From: Zygnema circumcarinatum SAG 698-1b
Lineage: Eukaryota > Plantae > Zygnematophyceae
Length of the DNA: 64,000 nt
Reading direction: 5' to 3'
Assembly (NCBI GenBank): GCA_037447605.1
Contig: CM074806.1
Coordinates: forward strand, 3,844,001-3,908,000
Shown: positions 8,920-64,000 of the stretch, piece by piece
Position numbering within the stretch: position 1 is the stretch's first letter
Layout of the letters: every line of letters begins with the position of its first letter
The notes under the pieces: generated by a model
Seen by the model: only the letters and a program-made list of their open reading frames with translations
The model's database searches: none
Told to the model about the DNA's origin: nothing
Program-made: the position numbers and the translations under genes

Positions 8920-10433
8920 CTAAACGTGGCCTCGGCCTCCACACGTGGGGCACATCAAGCTTCCAGAGCCTCCGCATCCTGCAAGCCACCACATAAACAG
9001 AGTTAACATGAATTAGTGGCAGAATTCAAGCTTAAATGTCTGGAATTTTTACAAAGTAAATCACATAACACAGCAAACGACAACAGTATTGATGAAATGA
9101 ATGCAAAATAGAAACCTTCATACTGAGACTGACGAAGGTGGAGCTAAACACTCACCCATGCAGCGAACCTTCACAATTATTCCTTGGCTCTCCAGAATGG
9201 GCTCCACATAAAGACCAGAAGCACTACAAGTCGCACATTCTACTACTCCCACACATTTGCATTTGGAACACGGAGGATTATTCCCAATCGCCCGGACTGC
9301 CATAGTAGAAACTGCCCGGGGTTTCTCTATGACTTCAGAGGGCACTGTGGTGTCACAATAATAAAGTCTCTCCAATTTACTTCGATACCGCACAGATTCT
9401 GAAGGAGTGGGATTTCCCCCAGGCCGATTTGCCTGCAATCAGTCCAAACATGTTAAACAGTAAACTTAAAGTCTGACGTAGAACCGACCCAATCACTGAG
9501 TAGATTCTCCTATTAGTGTGAAGGGCAAAGACAGAACAGAGACCGCAGTCAACTCAGTACGGCAAAAAGGTGCTCTACCAAGAATGCAAAAGGATGCCTA
9601 AAAGCAGTTTCCACCTGCTTTGCAATGTGTCCATTAGACGAACATATAATTGTGCCTATTCCTCTAAGTTGCACGATAGCATAAATAAAGTCGCACAAAT
9701 CCAAGAATTTGCCAACACGTCTACGTTCCCTAGTCATGCCAGTCGTCCATGGGTCTGAAACGAAGTACAGCTTATAGTGAAAATTCCACTGTATAGCAAT
9801 CACGTCGCAGAATATTTCACATCAAATTTATCAGAAAGTGGGAAAAACCAACTGCACTTCGCCTTGAGCATCCATAGAGCAATAGTACTCCTTCCCTTGT
9901 CCTTAGGCAATACCTCTCCCTATCCTATGCATACAGCCTCAAGTACTTGACGCCTTTGCACAAACGTTCAGCCTGCATTCATTTGGTACCGTCGCTCAAA
10001 GCATAATTAGGGTTACAAACAAATCAAACTCGGAATCCTGGTCCTGCCTTTGGCCATCCAGCCCCACACCGCTCATTCTCTTCTCCCCTCCCACTTCTCT
10101 CCTCATTATCTCTCCCAAACACTGCTAAGCACTTACTTCCACTCCCAATCCCCCCTCCCACAAACTTCACTTACCAGTTCCCAGCATCCCCATTAACACA
10201 CCCTGTAGCGAAATTCTGCACTAGCCACTAGAACGTCAATACACCCCTTTAAATCTTACATTAATCCCAAAAATGTGAAGTAAAGATGCGAATACCTCGG
10301 TGTCGGACACGCTTTCGCTGCTGCACCGCCATGGCCGCGAGGAACAAGGAGAGGCCCTTGCTAAGGCTCTCGCTCCCGCCCGCTGGTCGAACAGCACCTT
10401 GCTGAAAGGGAGATTTGGTGCCGCCATGGCCAT
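8920..10433 (-). CDS. Small plastid DnaJ-type zinc-finger protein (Tsip1/At5g17840-like), 3 exons, about 157 aa
   Basis: Exons 10433-10296, 9432-9156 and 8978-8920 total 474 nt in frame. Peptide PPCSKCKCVGVVECATCSASGLYVEPILESQGIIVKVRCMGCGGSGSLMCPTCGGRGHV* has four CxxC motifs. Subfamily assignment is from memory. Confidence 0.85.
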
Positions 10434-27529: not shown

Positions 27530-29774
27530 ATGGCGGAAATTCTGAAACCTAATGCAGATACTCCAGCGGAGGATAGCGTGGTTAATGGCACATTCAGGTG
27601 GACCATCATAAATTTTTCCCGCATGGAAGCAGGGAAAAGGCATTATTCTGATGTGTTTCATATTGGACGAACGAAATGGTCAGTGAGCCTAGACAGAACG
27701 AAGCCTCTGATCCACCTGCATGTTCTTCGCAAGGGCCTTAGCAGCAGTAAGTTCTTTCTGCAGCATGATACTGGAGGTCGTTCAAACGGCATTGTTGCGT
27801 CCTGATGAACAATGTGCAATTTAAATTCCTCCTTTGCATCTCCTCACATTTATATTCTGTGTTTGTTTGCATTTGTATTGGGAGGAGAAGATTAGATGGT
27901 CGTTCCAGAGCAGCATTAAGTGGCTTTAATCTCTTGAAACTTGGAGCTATATGCTGGGATGTGGGATGTTCATTCGATTGAGCAGTAGTAGAACTATGGG
28001 GGTTGTGATTCAGGAGCCGAAAAGTGGCTCATTTTGGCAGCAATCAAAAGAAGAAAAGCGAGGTAAACCACTAACTGGGCAGCACTGTATTCTGCAGGCA
28101 AGTGCTGCTTCTTGGCCGGACCGACATAGGAGACCTCTCTATGTATCTTCGGAATGCTGAAAATCTCGACTTTGGCTGGAGCAGGCATGCCAAGTTCTCG
28201 TTGCGGATCATCAGCCAGCTGCGGCCTGAACTCAGCCACAAGAAAGGTGTGCTTCCTGCAAGCTGCAAAGCCAAAATCGTTGCGGTGAAATTGTTTAGGA
28301 GAGTCCATTAAAGGCTTGGTTATCAAATTGGTCGAAGGGGTTTGCTCTACCGTGATACTGTTACGCCATGTCCTCCGTTTCGCGCAGGAACTGAGAAGCC
28401 TGCCCTCTGACAATGCCTTGGCTTTTCTGGAGCTACAAAACTTCAACACTGATTGTTCTGAGGCTACAGCATTGCGCACTTCTATCATTCCTCACATTCG
28501 TCTTTTCTCGTACTGCCATGTACCATGCAGATGCATCCTACAAGTACCATAAGCGAGTCACGGACTGGGGCTTTAAGTCGTATATCTCCTTCAAAGCCCT
28601 GATGAACCCTGAAAAGGGATTCCTTTTGAAGGACACGCTGATCATTGAAGCGGAGGTCTACGTTTCCAAAATTGTGGGCCTCCTTAAGCCATTGTCGGCT
28701 GAGGCGATAGCCCCTGTGAGTGATACTGGGCAGGCAGCTGGTTTTGGTCGCCTCCAGGCAGAAGGGTCAGCTGAGTTTTCCAACCCGCAGCAGCTGGCTT
28801 TAGGAGCGGCGCCGACTTACGTCTCGTCTGCATTGGGCTCAGATAACACTGAAATGCTCCCATCTATCCTTCCAACAATCTTCAAATCGTCAGATGCTTT
28901 AGGGTGGTCGGACAGATCTATTCAAGCAATGTTGGAGAACAAGAGAAGGGCCGGCGAGGAAAAGGTGAGGAGCATTCAGAAGAACGCAGACAAATTAACA
29001 GCTGAAGTTGAAGCCTGTGAGAAAAAGCTGGAAGCTGCAAAGCAAGGGCTGCATGCTTCTCAGCAAGCAGCACAGGCAGTTCTGCAAGAGCTTGCGGCTG
29101 CGAAGAAGTCTTCAGCTGAAGATTATCAGAGGGCGCTGAAGGCCATTGCTGCTCAGCGGAAGAAGGTCGAGCAAGAGTTTAGGCTCCTTCAGAGTCTTAT
29201 AATGCCTACTGATTCGCTCACTTCTATGGAGCGTGGCTGCGAGGCTAGCATGGGCGTGCCTGGAGGCACAGATGCACAAACGGGCGACGGCGTGGGAGAA
29301 AGCACAGAACGAAGTGGAGACATAGAGGCTTGTATAGGCGAGGGTATTGCTGCTCCCAGAGGAGAGGACAATCGAGAAGGAGAGGGAATAGATTTTACTG
29401 GACCGGGTATCCATGTTGGCTCTGTTGATGGCAGAGATGGTGACAGAAGTGGAGTGGATGAGAGTTTGGAAGACAGACCTCTTGCCTTCCTGGCTGCAGA
29501 AATGGCTGCGTTTCCAAGTCGGACTGCAGATGGACAGATTCCTGATGCAAGGGAGAGGGAACTCGAGGGCGACCTTCTGCTAACTGAGGGTACTTCACTA
29601 GGACGACTTACGGTAGGATCTTTACAATGGTGGCAAAATGTGGCCGACGTGGCTGCCGAGCTTATGGTTCAGGTAAGCTCAGGCACTTTGAAAAGATCAA
29701 GGGATGTGGAGGAGCAGTTGGAAAAGTTCGAAAATGAGGCTAAGAGACTGAAGTATCAGCAGGACCAGCTGTAG
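27530..29774 (+). CDS. MATH/TRAF-domain protein with C-terminal coiled coil and acidic region
   Basis: Exons 27530-27678, 28098-28246 and 28531-29774 give GTFRWTIINFS...YSDVFHIGRTKWQVLL...LSMYL...AKFSLRII...DWGFKSYISFKALMNPEKGFLLKDTLIIEAEV (MATH fold), followed by heptad-rich K/E/A/Q sequence. Confidence 0.88.
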
Positions 29775-55239: not shown

Positions 55240-56249
55240 GTCCATAGTTCGTGGTCATGTTTACTAACGCAGCTCATCGGTGGTTGTGGGCATCATTATT
55301 ATGTATACTACTAAGAATTTTCTACCAACCCATTATGTCAAGCCCCTCTACCAGCAGGGATTGAATAAAAGGTTCTTGTAGCTGTGACTGACCTCGTTAA
55401 ATAGCACAATACAATACAGTGGTCTCAAATAGCAGAGGGACTCATCCACTGATGAGAAGTACCAGAGCTGCTGATCACCGGCTATTCGAAGTACTATATT
55501 CAAATGGGCAGAGCACAGGATCCTTTGCTAGGAATCCGTCTTTTGAACAGAGTCTGAAAGCCTCAAGGCATGCTGTCCATGCGGCAGGCCCTTTGTAACA
55601 ATAGAAATTTGCTGCCCGGCTGAACCTCTCAGTTGCAGGCGCAGTGTCTTATTAGTGCTTCACTCAACTGCAAGAAGGCGACCATTCAAAGTTCAACAAT
55701 GGCGTCACGTGGTTGTTTTCTGCTAGAGTGCATGTGAGCTTCACGATTTTCTGATAAATGGTTTTTATGATGCTGCTGTTGGTGAATGTGAATACCACCA
55801 CCATCCGTGATTTATTTTGTGACTTATCTAACTTGCATCCTGCCGCACTCATGGTATCGCAATGTGTGGGAGCTGAATTTAGGGAGCGACGAGAGGTGAA
55901 TAAGAATGTGAATTGTGTTTCTAAGAGGTGCGCAGTAAGAGAGGTTTTCAGGGTTTTAAAGAGGAAAACACGAAAATATGTTACGTTGGAACTTAGACCA
56001 ATCATTGCTACAGTGTTTGCTGACCACAAATTTATTAGCTTGTCCTAAGCAATAACCGGGCAATCCCCATAAGGACCATTTTTGCAATATAGGGCTAAGC
56101 AATGCAATCTATGATACGTGCCTTTGTTTGTTGGCTTTAACATTTGCCATGATCGGCCTTCAAGGTTAAAACCATGGCCTAAAAATTAACGGCCACCTGG
56201 AAATGGCAACAGCGGGAGCTTCTGTTGTGCTCAAACCATCTGCCAGACC

Positions 56250-59200
56250 TCATGATGTGTGAAAGAGGGGGTCTCTGTTCACATCCTTATACAGGAAGTA
56301 TCGCGAGCGGTCTTTGCCCAGGGCGGCATACCTGCATCCCCCTCATGCACAACGGAAAATTTCAGTCTCAAATGACTACTAATCTGAATGGCCAAGGACT
56401 TGCTTCTGTCTCGGGAAAGAACATGGGAACAGAGGAAGTGAACTTACCACTGTGGCACAAACGGTGCCATCCAGATCGCATCTCCGGCCTGCACCGGGTA
56501 CCTGAAATTGTTCCCAGAGCGTCTCTCACCAGTTAACACACATGACAACGACGATTGAAGTTAGCATGGTATCAGTGACGGAAAAATGTACAGACTGTTA
56601 CCATTTATCTGCGAGGCGATAGATCCCTCGGCCCTCCAAGAGGATGAGTCCATGCTGGTTGTAATGCACCTCCTGCACATAGAAAGATGTGCAAAAATGT
56701 TGAGTCAGTTAGGTGATAACTGACAACCTGTTTCAACATAGCAGCACGTTGTCCTGTAGGTGAAGAGAGGAATGCAGCTAACACACATACCTTGACATTT
56801 AGATATTCCCCAGGTTGGAAGTCCATAATCTGCATGAAACACCATCAACATGACAGACTAGAGATCACGTTCACAAACTCGGAAAGAGAATAAAACGACC
56901 TGAGAGGCAAGATGATGGACGGATCCTTCATATGATTAGCGGAAAGCGAGGCTGCCATGTTTCATCAATTTCTGACGCATTTTGCATGGGAGAGAATAGC
57001 CCATACATGGATATTGAAGTCATACGCTGGCCCTGTTGGCAACAGCTTTCGTAACGCAAAGACCTGTTGATCGAAGAAAAAACAAATCATTCATAAAAAC
57101 TAGAGCTCAGTCCATACAAGAGAGCCAATTGATGCGCGTGATCGCCCCCATACATTTAGGAGGCTTTTGTTTTTTCAAGAAGATTCATCAATCCGTTGGA
57201 CGACTACACGCACCTCTCCTGGCACATCAATCAGAGGCCGTTCACTCGTCATTCCCAGGGCCACTTCCGGAACTGCACCATCGGAAGCTCCTTTTGCGTA
57301 TCTGTAACAGGGTCAAAAGATTATGCAAGGTCAAGTGACAGCATCCTACCCTGTGAACGGAACAAACACAAACCACATCCATGAATGAGGAATAATTCAA
57401 GTGGAGAGGGACCCAGGGGGGGGCATATCTGATGCCTTACATGCGCTCTACAACAATTAAGCTTGCTCCATACGTTGATGTCAACTGATGCTCCACACCT
57501 GGTGGTACGTATGCATAACCATCCACCTGCGCAAGATGTTTTCGGTCTTTGCTCGTTCAGTTTGGTAGAAAGAAAGGTAACGACAATATGCAGGGTTAAT
57601 ATAACACGACTCAGAACAACGACATGCAGTACTTGCAACTCCATACATCATGAGCAAAACCGTGAAGTACCTTCAGCTGCTGTTCGATCAAAGAGCCAAC
57701 GCTGAAGTGAACCTCCCCTTTCACAACAAACGCCAGTCTGCATAGCAGAGAACATGCTCTAGGGCACTTTGTCATGGACATTTTTCAGTTCAGGCAATGG
57801 AAGAAGTTTTGCATTTCAGTTCTGCAGTAAAATGGGCGTCGGCAAGAAACCATTGCAAAAAATGAATCTGCAGAATCCCTCATTCTCACCTCTCCACTCC
57901 AGGACTCGGAGATGCTGAAGATGAATTGCCTGCACAGACAATCTACTCGTATGTGAAACACTTTTCTTCTGTAAACTGCAAGGAGTGTCTCAATTTGATG
58001 CAGACGAAGCTTAAAGAGAACAAAACAACGTTTGAAAGAATTAGGCATTCAATTGACCCACCCGCCATGCTGGCAATGTACATCACAAAGTGGGCTCCCA
58101 TAGCAGGTGTTATGATGTACGCTCCCAGAGTGTTGCTCCTGTGTAGCAGCAGAAAGCAGCAAAATGAGTTTGACTTCAAAAAGCTTAGAAAATCAACATA
58201 TCATTCTTCAAAGAGTGTCACCACAAAACCGAGTCAAAGCCTCTCACCATCCTGACAGAGGCCCATAGACGTGGCTCTCTGCAGTAACCAGCGCATGGTC
58301 CCGCTCGTACACACTGCGGGTGAAGCCCGGGAGGTCTGTGATTGGCAGAATCAGTAAACTTTTGTGATTGACCCTTATTAACCAGTCTTTACTGGCCACG
58401 CATGATTATCGACCTGCGTATTCAGCAACTCAACAACATATAGGCACGCATTCCCAAACTAACCTATTTTCTCTTCGCGTCATCTCACCAATTGATCCCG
58501 CTAGTTGCGGCATTCAGATGCAAGCAAACTAACAATGAACCGAGCAGATACACATCAGACTCAAAACCCTTGTTGCACAGTGAATCTGAGATTCACGGAA
58601 CGATTGCGATTAAGCTCACCACTTAAGTGAATGGGTTTCAAAGTTGGTTCGGTGACTTTCTCGTACTGAAAAGGTGTAGCTCTCCCGAAGACGTCCTCCT
58701 GCGCCGCTCCTGCAGCGATACAAGAAACAAGATAAGCATGCTTTCAATGGCGTAGATGCACAAAGCTACATTTTACTACCATACACTACTTCAAAGTCTT
58801 TCCGCATCATTGGTAGCGACAAGTATCAGTAGCAGGCTTCCAATAACGGCAATGCTGTGGACAATAAGAATCGTCTACTTCACCGTTCAATACTGACGTT
58901 ATGCATTATAGCAATGACTGAAATAAAGATAGTTTATCTATGTGGCGACGTATTTGTCTACATAGTAAAGTTTCCCTTGTCAGCCGCCAGTGATATAATC
59001 TGGTCTGCTCGACGTCTACAAAACCAGCTAATACCACCTTAAAAATCCTCTAAGAAAGTGAACATTGCTCTCAGTAATTTGAAGGGTACAGCTGTCATTC
59101 GATACTAAAGTAATTTATATACACAACAGCTTCATATTTTGTGCAAAGCCGTCCAACGACCTTCAGCCGCTATGTGCCATCCGTTTCTACAGAGACAGGT

Positions 59201-59819
59201 CGAAGCAAAAAATACAAAAGTGAAGCAAGGAGAGACTGTGTTGCAACGTTCTGTATTTCCGAACATAACATCGGCATGAATCTAAATTGCTCCCAAGAAT
59301 TTGTAACAGTGTGTATGTTCATGCAAGGAAAAATCCTAACGCCGGATTACAGCAGTGCATTGGTTTACCCATACCAATGCATGCAATGAGAAGGCCACCT
59401 TATCTTGCGATAGAGAAAATGCGCTTGTCAAATTTTAAAATAGCGATTTTTTTTTTTCCATATCTTACGTTGCTTAAATCAGGTTTCCGCTTGCTCTCCC
59501 TTTCCTGACTAAATGATATCTTAGAGCCCGCATAGACCCCTCTTCTCTTTTCTCACAAAATGCTGGCCAACATACACCCCCAAATACTGTCTCTCAGTCC
59601 ATATCATGCGTCGCAATGCAGCGGAGATGCAAGCCAGCGCCGTCTATCTGCAAGCCAAGAACCAGGCCCTTTCCAAGCTCCAGATTCCAGCCAAGGGGAG
59701 AAAGTACCTTCCAATAGAATCCCACTTGACAGCTCCGCATGCACCTGCAATAAGGAAGCGAAGAGGAGGCTCCAAAGGCCGACCAAGACCGCCCGCGGGC
59801 AAGAGCTCCAGGCCGCCAT
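56250..59819 (-). CDS. UGlyAH: (S)-ureidoglycine aminohydrolase (cupin), with signal peptide
   Basis: Signal peptide MAAWSSCPRAVLVGLWSLLFASLLQVHA. Peptides DLPGFTRSVYERDHALVTAESHVYGPL, NTLGAYIITPAMGAHFVMY, IMDFQPGEYLNVK. Last exon YAALGKDRSRYFLYKDVNRDPLFHTS* stops at 56250. Confidence 0.95.
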
Positions 59820-59879
59820 GGCTGCCTGAGCGAGCTCGCAGGGACGGAGGGAGGGAGGCCAATGGAGGGGCCCTTAGCA

Positions 59880-60245
59880 AAAAAAGGCGTGACGTTACGG
59901 TAACGCGAGTGCTACACAGCGCGCCCTTGCACGTGTCAAAACGTCTCTTGATTGGCGGGAGTATCTTCACACTTGTGAAGGAACGCGACTATTTGGCGCG
60001 TGGCCATGACGCCGTGACGCCGGTTCGCACGTGCGAAAAGGAAAACTGGATTTGTGACGTTGCTCCGTTTATCCAATTACCAGTCCACACGTGTACATAT
60101 ATACACGTGTCGAGTCACCATTGGGAGCTGCTCTAGTACTGCAGCGAAAAAAGCGAGCGCTGAGATCAACGCCCTTAGAAGCACAAGTCAATCAGAGACC
60201 GCCACGTGTACAATTTGCTGATGTGGCGGGCTGTGATTGGGTCAG
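59880..60245. promoter_or_regulatory. Bidirectional promoter between UGlyAH and UAH with clustered G-boxes and TGACG motifs
   Basis: CACGTG at 59930, 60028, 60088, 60104 and 60203. TGACG near 59890, 60007, 60015 and 60055. GATTGG (reverse CCAAT) near 59950 and 60235. Confidence 0.65.
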
Positions 60246-61531
60246 CCTGGACAGCACTAATTAACCTGTTGAGGCCATTTTTCTTGGAAGCAGCTGCAAG
60301 AGAGGGAGGGGAGGGAGCTTTTAGGGGAGGAATGTATGCAGCTTTGAGCGATTGATGAAGGCTCGGCAGTAGTATTGGCTAGCCGCTATTTGAAGAATCT
60401 GTGGGCCAGATATTCGGCGTGAAAGGTGTGTGTTTCATTGTCAGTCTTGTTGTCACGAATTGGCATTTCATCTCGTTTTTTTTTTTTGTAAAGCCAGCTG
60501 TCGGACCAGAGCTCATGAATTGCTGCTTTTTTTTTTGCATTGATGTGGAACAGGTGCCTATTGATGAAAGATAATCTTGTGGCACCTCAAATTATGCATT
60601 ATGGAGAGAAGTTTGTGCACGTGATGCATATCAATCTATCATGTTTTCAAAATTTCAAGTTTTGAATCACATAAGCTTCTCGCTGCATTTCTTTCATTTT
60701 TTTCATCAAATTGCTTTCGTTCTCAGCTAGAATTCTCAGACCCTGGTTTGTAATGAAATGCTTTTCATCTTCAGGCTCCACATTGCTGTCAAAAGCACCT
60801 ATTTTCTCTTTACTTTTGTGCATCATTTAAGATACCTTTTCTACAAATTTTATCTCTCAACATCCTAGCTCTAGTTTTGGAGCACCGCAGTAGACCCAGG
60901 AGTCTATCTCCTATAGTAATTTGAGTTATTTCATGGTCTAATCTCCCAGTTTTATGCAGTCTCAGAAATGATGGTACATTCTTCGTGAACATTAAAATAA
61001 TTGTCTTGCATGTAGTTTTTTGAATAGTAGTGGAACGAATTCTTGAAAGGGCCTTCATGTGTGAGCCACTCAGATAAGATTGGAAATGTTTCAATGTTTC
61101 ATTGCATGAAGAATGCTGACAGATTTGAAGTCTGGTAAGCTCAAAGTAACTAAGTATTGAACCGTGAATGCGCATTGAGTTATACGCACCTCATGGAGTG
61201 CAAGACATGCAATAGAAATTTCCACTGTGCACTCTATTCTGGATTGTTGTTTCTCTCCCGCCCTCCCGCCCTCCCGCCCTCCCTCCTTCCTTTTCCATTC
61301 TCCCGCTCGTTTCTCCTTACTTTTTTGCGGCTCCACCTTGACTCCATAGTTTGTTTGGAAGGACAATTTTCAATAAACCTGACAATAGGTACGCAATGAT
61401 CGCACAGCATCTTCTGTCAGACATGCACCTTGCCTTGTCCCGCTCATTTAAATGGCGAGCATTCCTTATCAATATCCTGCATCCTGCGTGTGTCAGGAAT
61501 CGCAAGTTTCTGGAGGGAGCCAGCCTGCAGA

Positions 61532-63950
61532 ATGGCATCTTTCCTGCAACCCGTCGCCTTTAACCTGGGAGTCCTTGCAGTAGTACTTGGGATGCTCCTC
61601 TTTTCGTTAGGCCTCCTTAAAGAGGGCACTGAAACTCTGGATTTATCCCCTACGTCGTCCTCATCAATGAAAACAGCGGAGGAGGTTAAAGCATCGATAG
61701 GACCAACAAAGGTAGCAAACAAAGTGAAGGCACCAGAAGTGCCGTTGAAGGTAGCTGAGGGCGTAGTGCGAAAGGTACCTTTCCTGGATGTGCAGGTGGA
61801 CATTGATTTGCTTCAAGATCAGGTGCTCACGTCTAGCCCTGCTATGTACATGCATATTTTTTTTTTCCTTTGCGCAAGGGTGTTGTCTGTCTCTCGGTCT
61901 AGAGTTCTCTGCTGCAGAATTCTCATAACAAAGAAAATTGTATCTTCAAGATATTCAGGCGATTGAGGAGCCCATCAGTATTGTTTTGCAGATTGATAAG
62001 CTTGGGAAACTTTCAGACCATGAACCGCCATCAGTAACTCGTATCTTATTCACCACCACGGATTTGGCCGGACGAAGGTGCTTCAAGAGAAACACTCCAC
62101 CTGTGAAATTTACGGCAATTCATAGTCATGGCTGAAGCCATATGACTATCTATGAATGATTATGTCTATCACAATACCATGCAGACAATTCCATCCAGTT
62201 TGGGTTTCCTTTCCTTATCCTGTCATCGTGTTAGTGACCTAGAAAGTGAAATTTTTCGCAACCGGTCCTCCTGCAGGCTTTCGTCGCCATACACTCAATA
62301 ACAACTCACGTATGCCTTCCACACTTGTTTGGTGCTGTGGTAGTGATGGTGGCTGTGCTGTGCTGTCTTGAGTCTGCAGATATGTCCGTTCACTCATGAT
62401 TGGTGCAGGATTGGATGTTCATGAGGATACCATTGGAAACATTTATGGCCGTTGGTAAGTTATCCCACTGAAAACAGTGTCAATGAGAGGAGGAAGCGGT
62501 CGCTCTTTGCAAGTTACGTGATAACTGAAAAACAGCAGTAAATATCCATTTTTTTCTCAATATATGTTTTCTTCTCTTTATTCGTTGAGATGCTTTAAAC
62601 ACACTATACAGCATGGTGCCAGGGTGGGTGAAGAGCCTGCGCTGCCGCGAGTGCTGACGGGGTCACACACAGATGCTATCCCACATGCTGGGAAGTACGA
62701 TGGTGTGCTCGGGGTGCTTGGTGCAATAGAAGCCATTTCTGCCCTCAAAAGGTTAGCCTTCCCCTTACATGTTTGAGCACTGAATGCACCAGAGTGCGTT
62801 CTTCTGTGCTTAGAGCATTTCAACACACTTATTTCTGCGGTATGTTTTGTGGCATCTGGTGACCACAGGGCTGGCTTCAAACCAAAGCGCAGCATTGAGG
62901 TCGTCATGTTTACATCAGAGGAACCAACACGATTTGGCTATGGCTGCCTTGGAAGGTGGGGCGTCTAGACACATCCTGCATGCAGGTGTCATCATGTCGC
63001 AACTACCGTCCCTGAGATTTCCCTGAGACACAACAATCAAAGATTGTTGCAACAGTTGAGATGTGTGAACTTTCTCTTGCGTTTTTGCCTTCAGCCGCTC
63101 TCTCCTCCGACCTCTGTGCTTGTTTCTACTGCAAAACCGGTTGTGCAGCTGCTCGAGATAACTCTGATGAAAGGCTTTTATGCGTGTGGTTGTCCATATG
63201 GTTATTTCAGCCGCATGATGGCGAACCAGGAAGGGTTCGCTGATAAATTGAGAACAGTAAAGGACAAAAACAACATTTCATTTGTGGAGGCAGCAGCAGA
63301 AGCACACCATCCGGAAGCTATTGACAATCTGGATAGTGTCATCATACAGCCCGGCACTCTATCAGCCTTCGTGGAACTGCACATTGAACAGGGCCCACTG
63401 CTAGAAGCGGAAGGTGGGCCCCATCATCATGCTTCCTTTGTAGTGTGGTGCTTTGTTGATGTATGGCTGCCCCAACCTGCCACTCAACCTTGCACTGATT
63501 TGAGGCGATGGTGTTGTTGAGGAAGTGGGGCAGGCGTTCCCATCGGTGTTGTCACTGCAATTGCAGCACCCGCAGCTCTTATTGTAGAGATGAAAGGAGG
63601 AGGTGGGCATGCGGGTGGTGTTCTGATGGAGCAGAGGTAGCGCTGCTCCTTTTCTTTCCTTTTTAACTTCTCCGAGAATCGTGACACATGCTTCCTGATT
63701 CTTGCTGTAACAACCACCATCCTGGAACTTTTTGTTTTGTTATATTGTTGTAGGTGATGGTGGCGTTGTTTGGATGCAGATTTCATGTTTTCGCATCCCA
63801 TTGTGTCTCGGTTCCGTTCTTGCTCATTTCTGTATCCTATTTTTTTTCCGTTCCAGAAACGATGCCGGATTGGCAGCTGCTGAACTAGCACTAGCAGTTG
63901 AGAGCCATGTATTGGCTACTGGTTCACGAGATACAGTAGGGACTACAGGT
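61532..63950 (+). CDS. UAH: Ureidoglycolate amidohydrolase (M20 family); the 3' end runs beyond the window
   Basis: N-terminal hydrophobic segment. Peptides IDKLGKLSDHEPPSVTRILF, TGSHTDAIPHAGKYDGVLGVLGAIEAI, FTSEEPTRFGYGCLG, FVELHIEQGPLLE, GVVTAIAAPA, GGHAGGVLM, NDAGLAAAELALAVE, DTVGTTG. Confidence 0.95.
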
Positions 63951-64000
63951 GAGAAGCATTGTGCAAGAGCAAGGCGTATTTGAGGACCTCTTTCATATAC

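Follow-up and report, generated by a model that had tools for sequence, protein, structure and literature searches.

Why should two consecutive enzymes of ureide catabolism be encoded head to head in the genome of an alga? In plants, linkage of pathway genes is known mostly from specialised metabolism, and the genes of primary nitrogen recycling are treated as dispersed. We analysed a stretch of 64,000 nucleotides of Zygnema circumcarinatum SAG 698-1b (contig CM074806.1, positions 3,844,001 to 3,908,000; hereafter the window), intron-rich eukaryotic DNA with a GC content of ~0.46, in whose last part the genes for (S)-ureidoglycine aminohydrolase (UGlyAH) and ureidoglycolate amidohydrolase (UAH) are transcribed away from each other. 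The two proteins are the second and third enzymes of the ureide pathway of the endoplasmic reticulum (ER), which leads from allantoate through ureidoglycine and ureidoglycolate to glyoxylate and NH3. The arrangement is a genuine one, a nuclear divergent pair in a streptophyte alga that is spliced, expressed and intact as far as the window reaches; the 3′ part of UAH lies beyond the window end, and the DNA past 64000 is outside our view.

Gene models and transcription starts were derived from spliced RNA contigs of four public RNA runs of the same organism, the 5′ ends of these contigs being taken as transcription starts. For UGlyAH, each of the twelve splice joints was recovered in 4/4 runs, with 5′ ends at 59858-59894 and a 3′ end near 56093 in run X1. 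For UAH, the 5′ contig ends fall at 60316-60351, and its exons 2-9 were modelled from reading frames and GT..AG sites, with RNA contigs supporting exon 2 and the first part of exon 3. The partial UAH product of 355 aa is in frame and all its introns are GT..AG; the window ends after exon 9 (63948), so that ~140 C-terminal residues are beyond it and the C-terminal catalytic half is outside view. The two genes are made up as follows.

56093..59894, minus strand: UGlyAH, a bicupin, 13 exons (RNA contigs)
59707-~59872/59894, 58620-58708, 58247-58335, 58061-58137, 57890-57928, minus strand: UGlyAH exons 1-5 (RNA contigs)
57669-57737, 57441-57524, 57212-57301, 57007-57061, minus strand: UGlyAH exons 6-9 (RNA contigs)
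56790-56829, 56599-56671, 56445-56498, ~56093-56328, minus strand: UGlyAH exons 10-13 (RNA contigs)
ATG 59819 down to stop end 56250, minus strand: UGlyAH coding sequence, spliced product of 316 aa, in frame
60316-60423, plus strand: UAH exon 1, non-coding, in the 5′ untranslated region (5′UTR) (RNA contigs; joint 60423 to 61495 in 4/4 runs)
60424-61494, plus strand: UAH 5′UTR intron, 1071 nt, GT..AG (RNA contigs)
61495..64000, plus strand: UAH, an M20 protein, exons 2-9, ATG 61532, running beyond the window end
61532-61822, 61992-62077, 62380-62454, 62623-62751, plus strand: UAH coding exons 2-5 (frames and GT..AG sites)
62869-62955, 63211-63413, 63534-63636, 63857-63948, plus strand: UAH coding exons 6-9 (frames and GT..AG sites)

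An earlier reading of this window, made from the letters alone (the sequence-only reading), had placed UGlyAH on the minus strand from an ATG at 59819 and UAH on the plus strand from an ATG at 61532, and both start codons are confirmed. It had seen no recognisable gene between them, and there is indeed no protein-coding gene there, though the non-coding exon 1 of UAH is. The hydrophobic N-termini that it ascribed to both proteins are present in the two translated products, and its view that proteins of unrelated fold cannot be a tandem duplication agrees with the Pfam assignments, Cupin_2 for one and Peptidase_M20 for the other.

The assignment of the minus-strand gene as a UGlyAH orthologue is supported by several comparisons. 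The piece 58244-58399 (minus strand) matches the structure of Arabidopsis UGlyAH (PDB 4e2q) with an E value of 8.7e-12, identity to the Arabidopsis protein is ~79% over one exon, and the 316-aa product shares 68% identity with its Physcomitrium orthologue and groups among streptophyte UGlyAHs in the tree. Its N-terminus is hydrophobic and resembles a signal peptide. In the alignment the motifs KEVHYNQHG and FVPQWYAALG are identical to those of the Brassica, moss and liverwort orthologues. The metal-site motif E-x-H-x3-H and the Gln of the C-terminal cupin are likewise kept, residues whose roles we take to be those described for the AtUGlyAH structure. In run X1 the 3′ end of the UGlyAH contig is at ~56093, whereas in the other three of the four runs the contig runs on for 670 nt or more beyond 55900, either as a long 3′UTR or through overlap with the next gene's transcript.

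The identity level and the match lists point to UAH, rather than AAH, as the plus-strand gene. The piece 63191-63400 (plus strand) matches AtUAH (PDB 4pxb) with an E value of 2.3e-10, the next match being a bacterial carbamoylase at 0.008, and every named match in the UAH exon search is a UAH. By BLASTP, the 355-aa product shows 63% identity over 270 aa with AtUAH, 65% with moss UAH and 66% with the Chara protein, within a range of 60-66% across streptophyte UAHs, in a comparison set made up without plant AAH sequences. The M20 motifs GSHTDA...GKYDG, FTSEEPTRFG, ELHIEQGP and GGHAG are conserved in the alignment. The paralogues UAH and AAH are only about 40% identical, well under the 60-66% found for the window protein.

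Some further features of the two genes were apparent. The UAH 5′UTR (60316-60423 plus 61495-61531, 145 nt) contains three upstream ATGs that open tiny upstream reading frames of 3-7 codons, for which translational control is possible. RNA of low depth lies within the UAH 5′UTR intron at 60591-61246 (run X2) and 60895-61052 (run X3); this coverage may stem from unspliced precursor or from a minor intronic transcript. The window UAH has at least 8 coding exons in its first 355 aa; moss UAH (loci L002, L006 and L008) is matched in four tblastn segments (~3 introns), liverwort UAH in 10-11 segments, and the Chara gene has no introns. These counts suggest that UAH lost introns in mosses and in Chara, while UGlyAH has kept one exon structure in the alga and the mosses.

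The sequence-only reading had described the pair as an operon-like cluster, a description that goes too far: the genes are on opposite strands, they are monocistronic with separate spliced transcripts, and there are only two of them. A wider metabolic cluster, of three or more pathway genes, was likewise rejected, as the window yielded no ureide gene besides these two. In the 64 kb, tblastn with 369 UAH and UGlyAH proteins found no AAH and no second M20 or cupin gene. No ureide-related Pfam family was detected on 50 open reading frames (ORFs) of at least 110 aa, nor on 86 ORFs of at least 70 aa in 40-56 kb, in a scan that may miss genes built of small exons. The AAH, allantoinase, urate oxidase and transporter genes for which the flanks were to be inspected were not detected in the window. 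As far as the window shows, the pair stands by itself as a unit of two genes, neither an operon nor a wider cluster.

Where the alga stands matters for the age of such a unit. In the UAH tree the window sequence forms a polytomy with Spirogloea and Chara and is not part of the land-plant clade (support 86/67, long branch); in the UGlyAH tree it belongs to a polytomy at the base, separate from tracheophytes, Bryopsida, Sphagnum and liverworts. Both trees agree with a streptophyte alga as the host.

Neighbourhoods of UAH and UGlyAH genes in other organisms were viewed with 10-kb flanks. UAH proteins came from a one-exon representative search, in which Spirogloea gave the closest protein (P0005, for which there is no contig), and from two homologue searches; UGlyAH proteins were reached through a moss cDNA contig from a metagenome scan. 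The homologue lists are mostly of angiosperms, and the comparison genomes do not include hornworts, ferns, Takakia, Klebsormidium, Zygnema or Mesotaenium. In Physcomitrium patens (L002), the plus-strand UAH is separated by 719 bp from a Cupin_2 gene of 317 aa that lies upstream of it on the minus strand. The same head-to-head UGlyAH-UAH arrangement is found in Ceratodon purpureus (L006), with a gap of 1251 bp, and at both moss loci UGlyAH is matched exon by exon (tblastn, tblastx). The sequence-only reading had taken an absence of conserved linkage in relatives as a sign of chance adjacency; in these two mosses the linkage is conserved. When 34 kb of the window (30-64 kb) were compared by tblastx with the moss loci, only UGlyAH and UAH matched and no flanking gene was shared, so that, as far as the available sequence reaches, the pair does not belong to a wider block of conserved genes.

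By our own estimate, assuming ~20,000 genes, a given gene becomes the divergent upstream neighbour of another with a probability of ~1e-5 to 1e-4 per lineage. The recurrence in mosses is an independent test of a hypothesis that had been framed beforehand, and, taken with these odds, it indicates that the pairing is not random; the adjacency is probably not due to chance.

The distance between the two genes is smaller than the coding sequences suggest. UAH begins with a non-coding exon (60316-60423), which leaves ~420 bp between the two transcription starts, compared with 1.7 kb between the ATGs, and with divergent orientation and less than 1 kb between starts the genes form a bidirectional pair. 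Five CACGTG G-boxes lie in this interval, compared with 0.24 expected, and 0/20,000 dinucleotide-preserving shuffles of the 443-bp stretch reach five. The cluster is the densest of the window, no other 350-bp stretch in the 64 kb having as many. As the G-box is palindromic it can serve both directions, which suits a bidirectional promoter; we infer a function for these G-boxes at the UGlyAH-UAH gap. The elements of the gap and of the adjoining intron are as follows.

59895..60315: inter-start region and candidate bidirectional promoter, ~420 bp, GC 0.52, between RNA contig 5′ ends
59930, 60028, 60088, 60104, 60203: five CACGTG G-boxes, palindromic, four of which read CACGTGT (motif scan)
59890, 60007, 60015, 60055: four TGACG motifs, the one at 59890 just inside the longest UGlyAH 5′ end
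60618: sixth G-box, in the UAH 5′UTR intron (motif scan)
61247-61295: low-complexity repeat in the UAH 5′UTR intron (sequence)

Both genes are expressed in 4/4 RNA runs (assembler depth 142-719 for UGlyAH, 37-120 for UAH). These depths speak for expression and not for co-regulation, which the sequence-only reading had tied to nitrogen recycling and which is plausible. A distal UAH start even nearer to UGlyAH, only ~120 bp away from it, may be indicated by weak RNA contigs at 60010-60313 (depth 5-11), or these may be background. In the 22-kb Physcomitrium locus (L002) the sole CACGTG, at 9548, falls within the UGlyAH-UAH intergenic region; as a single site, it is only a hint.

We lean, with moderate confidence, towards an explanation in which the short gap is one bidirectional promoter for a two-gene unit and the coupling of the genes explains why their adjacency survived or arose twice. 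The 420-bp gap would work as a single promoter, and bZIP or bHLH factors sitting on its orientation-independent G-boxes would drive the two genes jointly. Such joint control would keep in step two enzymes that handle labile intermediates, and this coupling could be the reason that the adjacency survived from a common ancestor or arose twice. A further-reaching proposal, that the pair is a selected streptophyte regulatory unit, older than land plants or assembled twice, for the joint handling of unstable ureidoglycine and ureidoglycolate, is possible and we advance it tentatively.

A number of observations weigh against a selected, co-regulated unit. First, the linkage is patchy: the synteny that the sequence-only reading had proposed to look for across streptophytes and their relatives is present in two Bryopsida mosses and is not general. 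The pair is absent in three liverworts, Marchantia (checked from the UAH and the UGlyAH side), Riccia and Calypogeia; in Sphagnum jensenii, checked from both genes, where UGlyAH is head to head with Raf1 on a 28.9-Mb chromosome and UAH is on one of 17-18 Mb; and in the lycophyte Diphasiastrum, in Chara and in Closterium. It is absent in Arabidopsis too, as had been anticipated, UAH lying there beside patatin and MFS genes with no cupin gene within 10 kb; the two Arabidopsis genes are presumably on different chromosomes. In ~12 angiosperms UGlyAH and UAH are on contigs of unequal size, judged by the longest contig reported for each protein. No UAH was found near plant-like UGlyAH at 33 metagenome loci, many with 4-10 kb of upstream flank, except at locus L037, and ~12 distinct plant-like (intron-containing) metagenome contigs are without the pair. 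Since most lineages are without it, linkage is not required for the pathway. Second, the gap itself is not conserved. The alga and the two mosses have no k-mer of 9 or more common to all three, blastn gives matches at chance level only, and the moss gaps contain one CACGTG (Physcomitrium) and none (Ceratodon), so the alga's cluster is not shared. Third, the UGlyAH/UAH depth ratio varies from 2.3 to 6.0 across the four unnormalised contig depths. Finally, closely spaced divergent genes are nothing unusual when a genome is compact (about one gene in every 5 kb), and 420 bp could have room for two separate core promoters.

The alternative that fares best against these data is neutral inheritance, in which the adjacency dates from an early streptophyte and has simply remained unbroken in the alga and in Bryopsida, each gene having its own core promoter. 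The patchy distribution, with many lineages unlinked, the lack of any promoter sequence or motif content common to alga and mosses, and the variable expression ratio are all in keeping with it. It is harder to reconcile with the fact that only the pair is shared, and nothing else in 34 kb, so that no slowly rearranging block can be invoked. If the alga is outside land plants, two lineages would also have had to retain the pair neutrally for several hundred million years and no fewer than five others to lose it, which would be an improbable coincidence when the genes are precisely those of two consecutive enzymes. We therefore regard this explanation as rather unlikely.

With the alga outside embryophytes, five or more losses are required if the pair arose once, compared with two independent gains. 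This parsimony argues for convergent assembly, in which gene relocation brought the genes together separately in the alga and in Bryopsida and selection for co-regulation favoured the result, as at the birth of the yeast DAL cluster. The differing promoters of alga and mosses fit such a history, as does the liverwort UAH, whose conserved head-to-head partner is another gene, Asparaginase_2. On the other side, the common orientation and the UGlyAH exon structure suit common descent equally, the placement of the alga on which the count depends is weakly supported (86/67, long branch), and hornworts, Takakia, ferns and other streptophyte algae lie outside the survey. We consider convergent assembly doubtful. 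Pure chance, acting twice independently and with no selection, is highly improbable: a genome-wide look for related neighbours does find some (~0.2 consecutive-enzyme pairs per genome in our rough estimate), but the same pair in the same orientation in a second lineage has a probability of ~1e-5 to 1e-4 by our own estimate, and it is seen in two mosses.

The liverwort neighbourhoods contain a partnership of their own. In Marchantia (L001, 5250-9287) and Riccia (L007, 5506-9346), UAH is head to head with, and directly adjacent to, an Asparaginase_2 gene (454-473 aa). In Calypogeia (L009, 1-152) the Asparaginase_2 gene is ~10 kb from UAH, with one gene between. The presence of this other amide-hydrolysing enzyme beside UAH is conserved across Marchantiopsida, and it follows from the liverwort partner that the upstream neighbour of UAH has been replaced during evolution. 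In Marchantia, a CMP/dCMP-deaminase gene lies 3 kb upstream of UGlyAH; it was considered as a guanosine deaminase, which would be an enzyme of purine catabolism, and rejected, the tRNA adenosine deaminase TadA fitting better (3e-34 compared with 6e-20).

Compact genomes of plants and algae often contain divergent pairs that share a short promoter, most of them with functionally unrelated partners, and co-location of primary nitrogen-assimilation genes in an alga is exemplified by the Chlamydomonas nitrate cluster. The window pair resembles bidirectional-promoter pairs in having less than 1 kb between starts and palindromic elements; unlike most, it joins consecutive enzymes whose intermediates are unstable and recurs in mosses. 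With the Arabidopsis AAH, UGlyAH and UAH system (Werner et al. 2010; 4e2q, 4pxb) it shares orthologous enzymes and hydrophobic N-termini consistent with ER targeting, but the ureide genes of Arabidopsis are dispersed whereas UGlyAH and UAH are adjacent here.

Bacterial purine-catabolism clusters, as outlined in section 11 of a 2026 review of purine-catabolism gene organisation (PMC13751858), are nitrogen-regulated and link consecutive ureide enzymes. The all cluster of Escherichia coli with allC and allE/ylbA, the puc cluster of Bacillus subtilis and the hpx cluster of Klebsiella are alike in that a cupin UGlyAH and an M20 amidohydrolase are linked. The window pair differs in being eukaryotic, intron-rich and monocistronic, with two genes on opposite strands and without a regulator, a transporter or a polycistronic mRNA. 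Such a bacterial operon form of the pair appears at L037 (1276-3038), from a high-GC soil metagenome, where an intron-less UGlyAH is followed after 12 bp, on the same strand, by an M20 amidohydrolase gene whose product is 52% identical to Chara UAH.

The nearest eukaryotic parallel is the DAL cluster of Saccharomyces, in which, according to the same section, allantoin genes were assembled by relocation and gene order affects expression (Wong and Wolfe 2005, via PMC13751858). As described there, it is likewise eukaryotic, consists of allantoin-degradation genes and includes divergently transcribed neighbours; it differs in having six genes, with allantoicase and a urea-releasing ureidoglycolate lyase, as opposed to two genes and an ammonia-releasing amidohydrolase in the window. 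That section gives only bacterial and yeast clusters. The literature that we searched, whose coverage is incomplete, holds no description of a UGlyAH-UAH pair in plants or mosses, whether as a head-to-head arrangement or as synteny; the sequence-only reading, too, knew of none in streptophytes.

If the proposed unit is real, it would be the plant lineage's first case of deeply conserved linkage between two genes of primary nitrogen catabolism. It is also a small, tractable system for asking whether selection for co-expression keeps plant genes adjacent. Physcomitrium is the obvious place to separate the pair, and the G-box block offers a defined element to mutate.

Elsewhere in the window, Pfam matches identify genes for DHBP synthase, TPT, CTP synthase, a carboxyl transferase, a MATH protein and an importin-like HEAT protein. 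At 28413-29774 there is an uninterrupted ORF of 453 aa with a weak MATH match (E 2.6e-07, just under the Pfam cutoff), and the neighbours of this MATH-like protein in a protein atlas are streptophyte MATH proteins.

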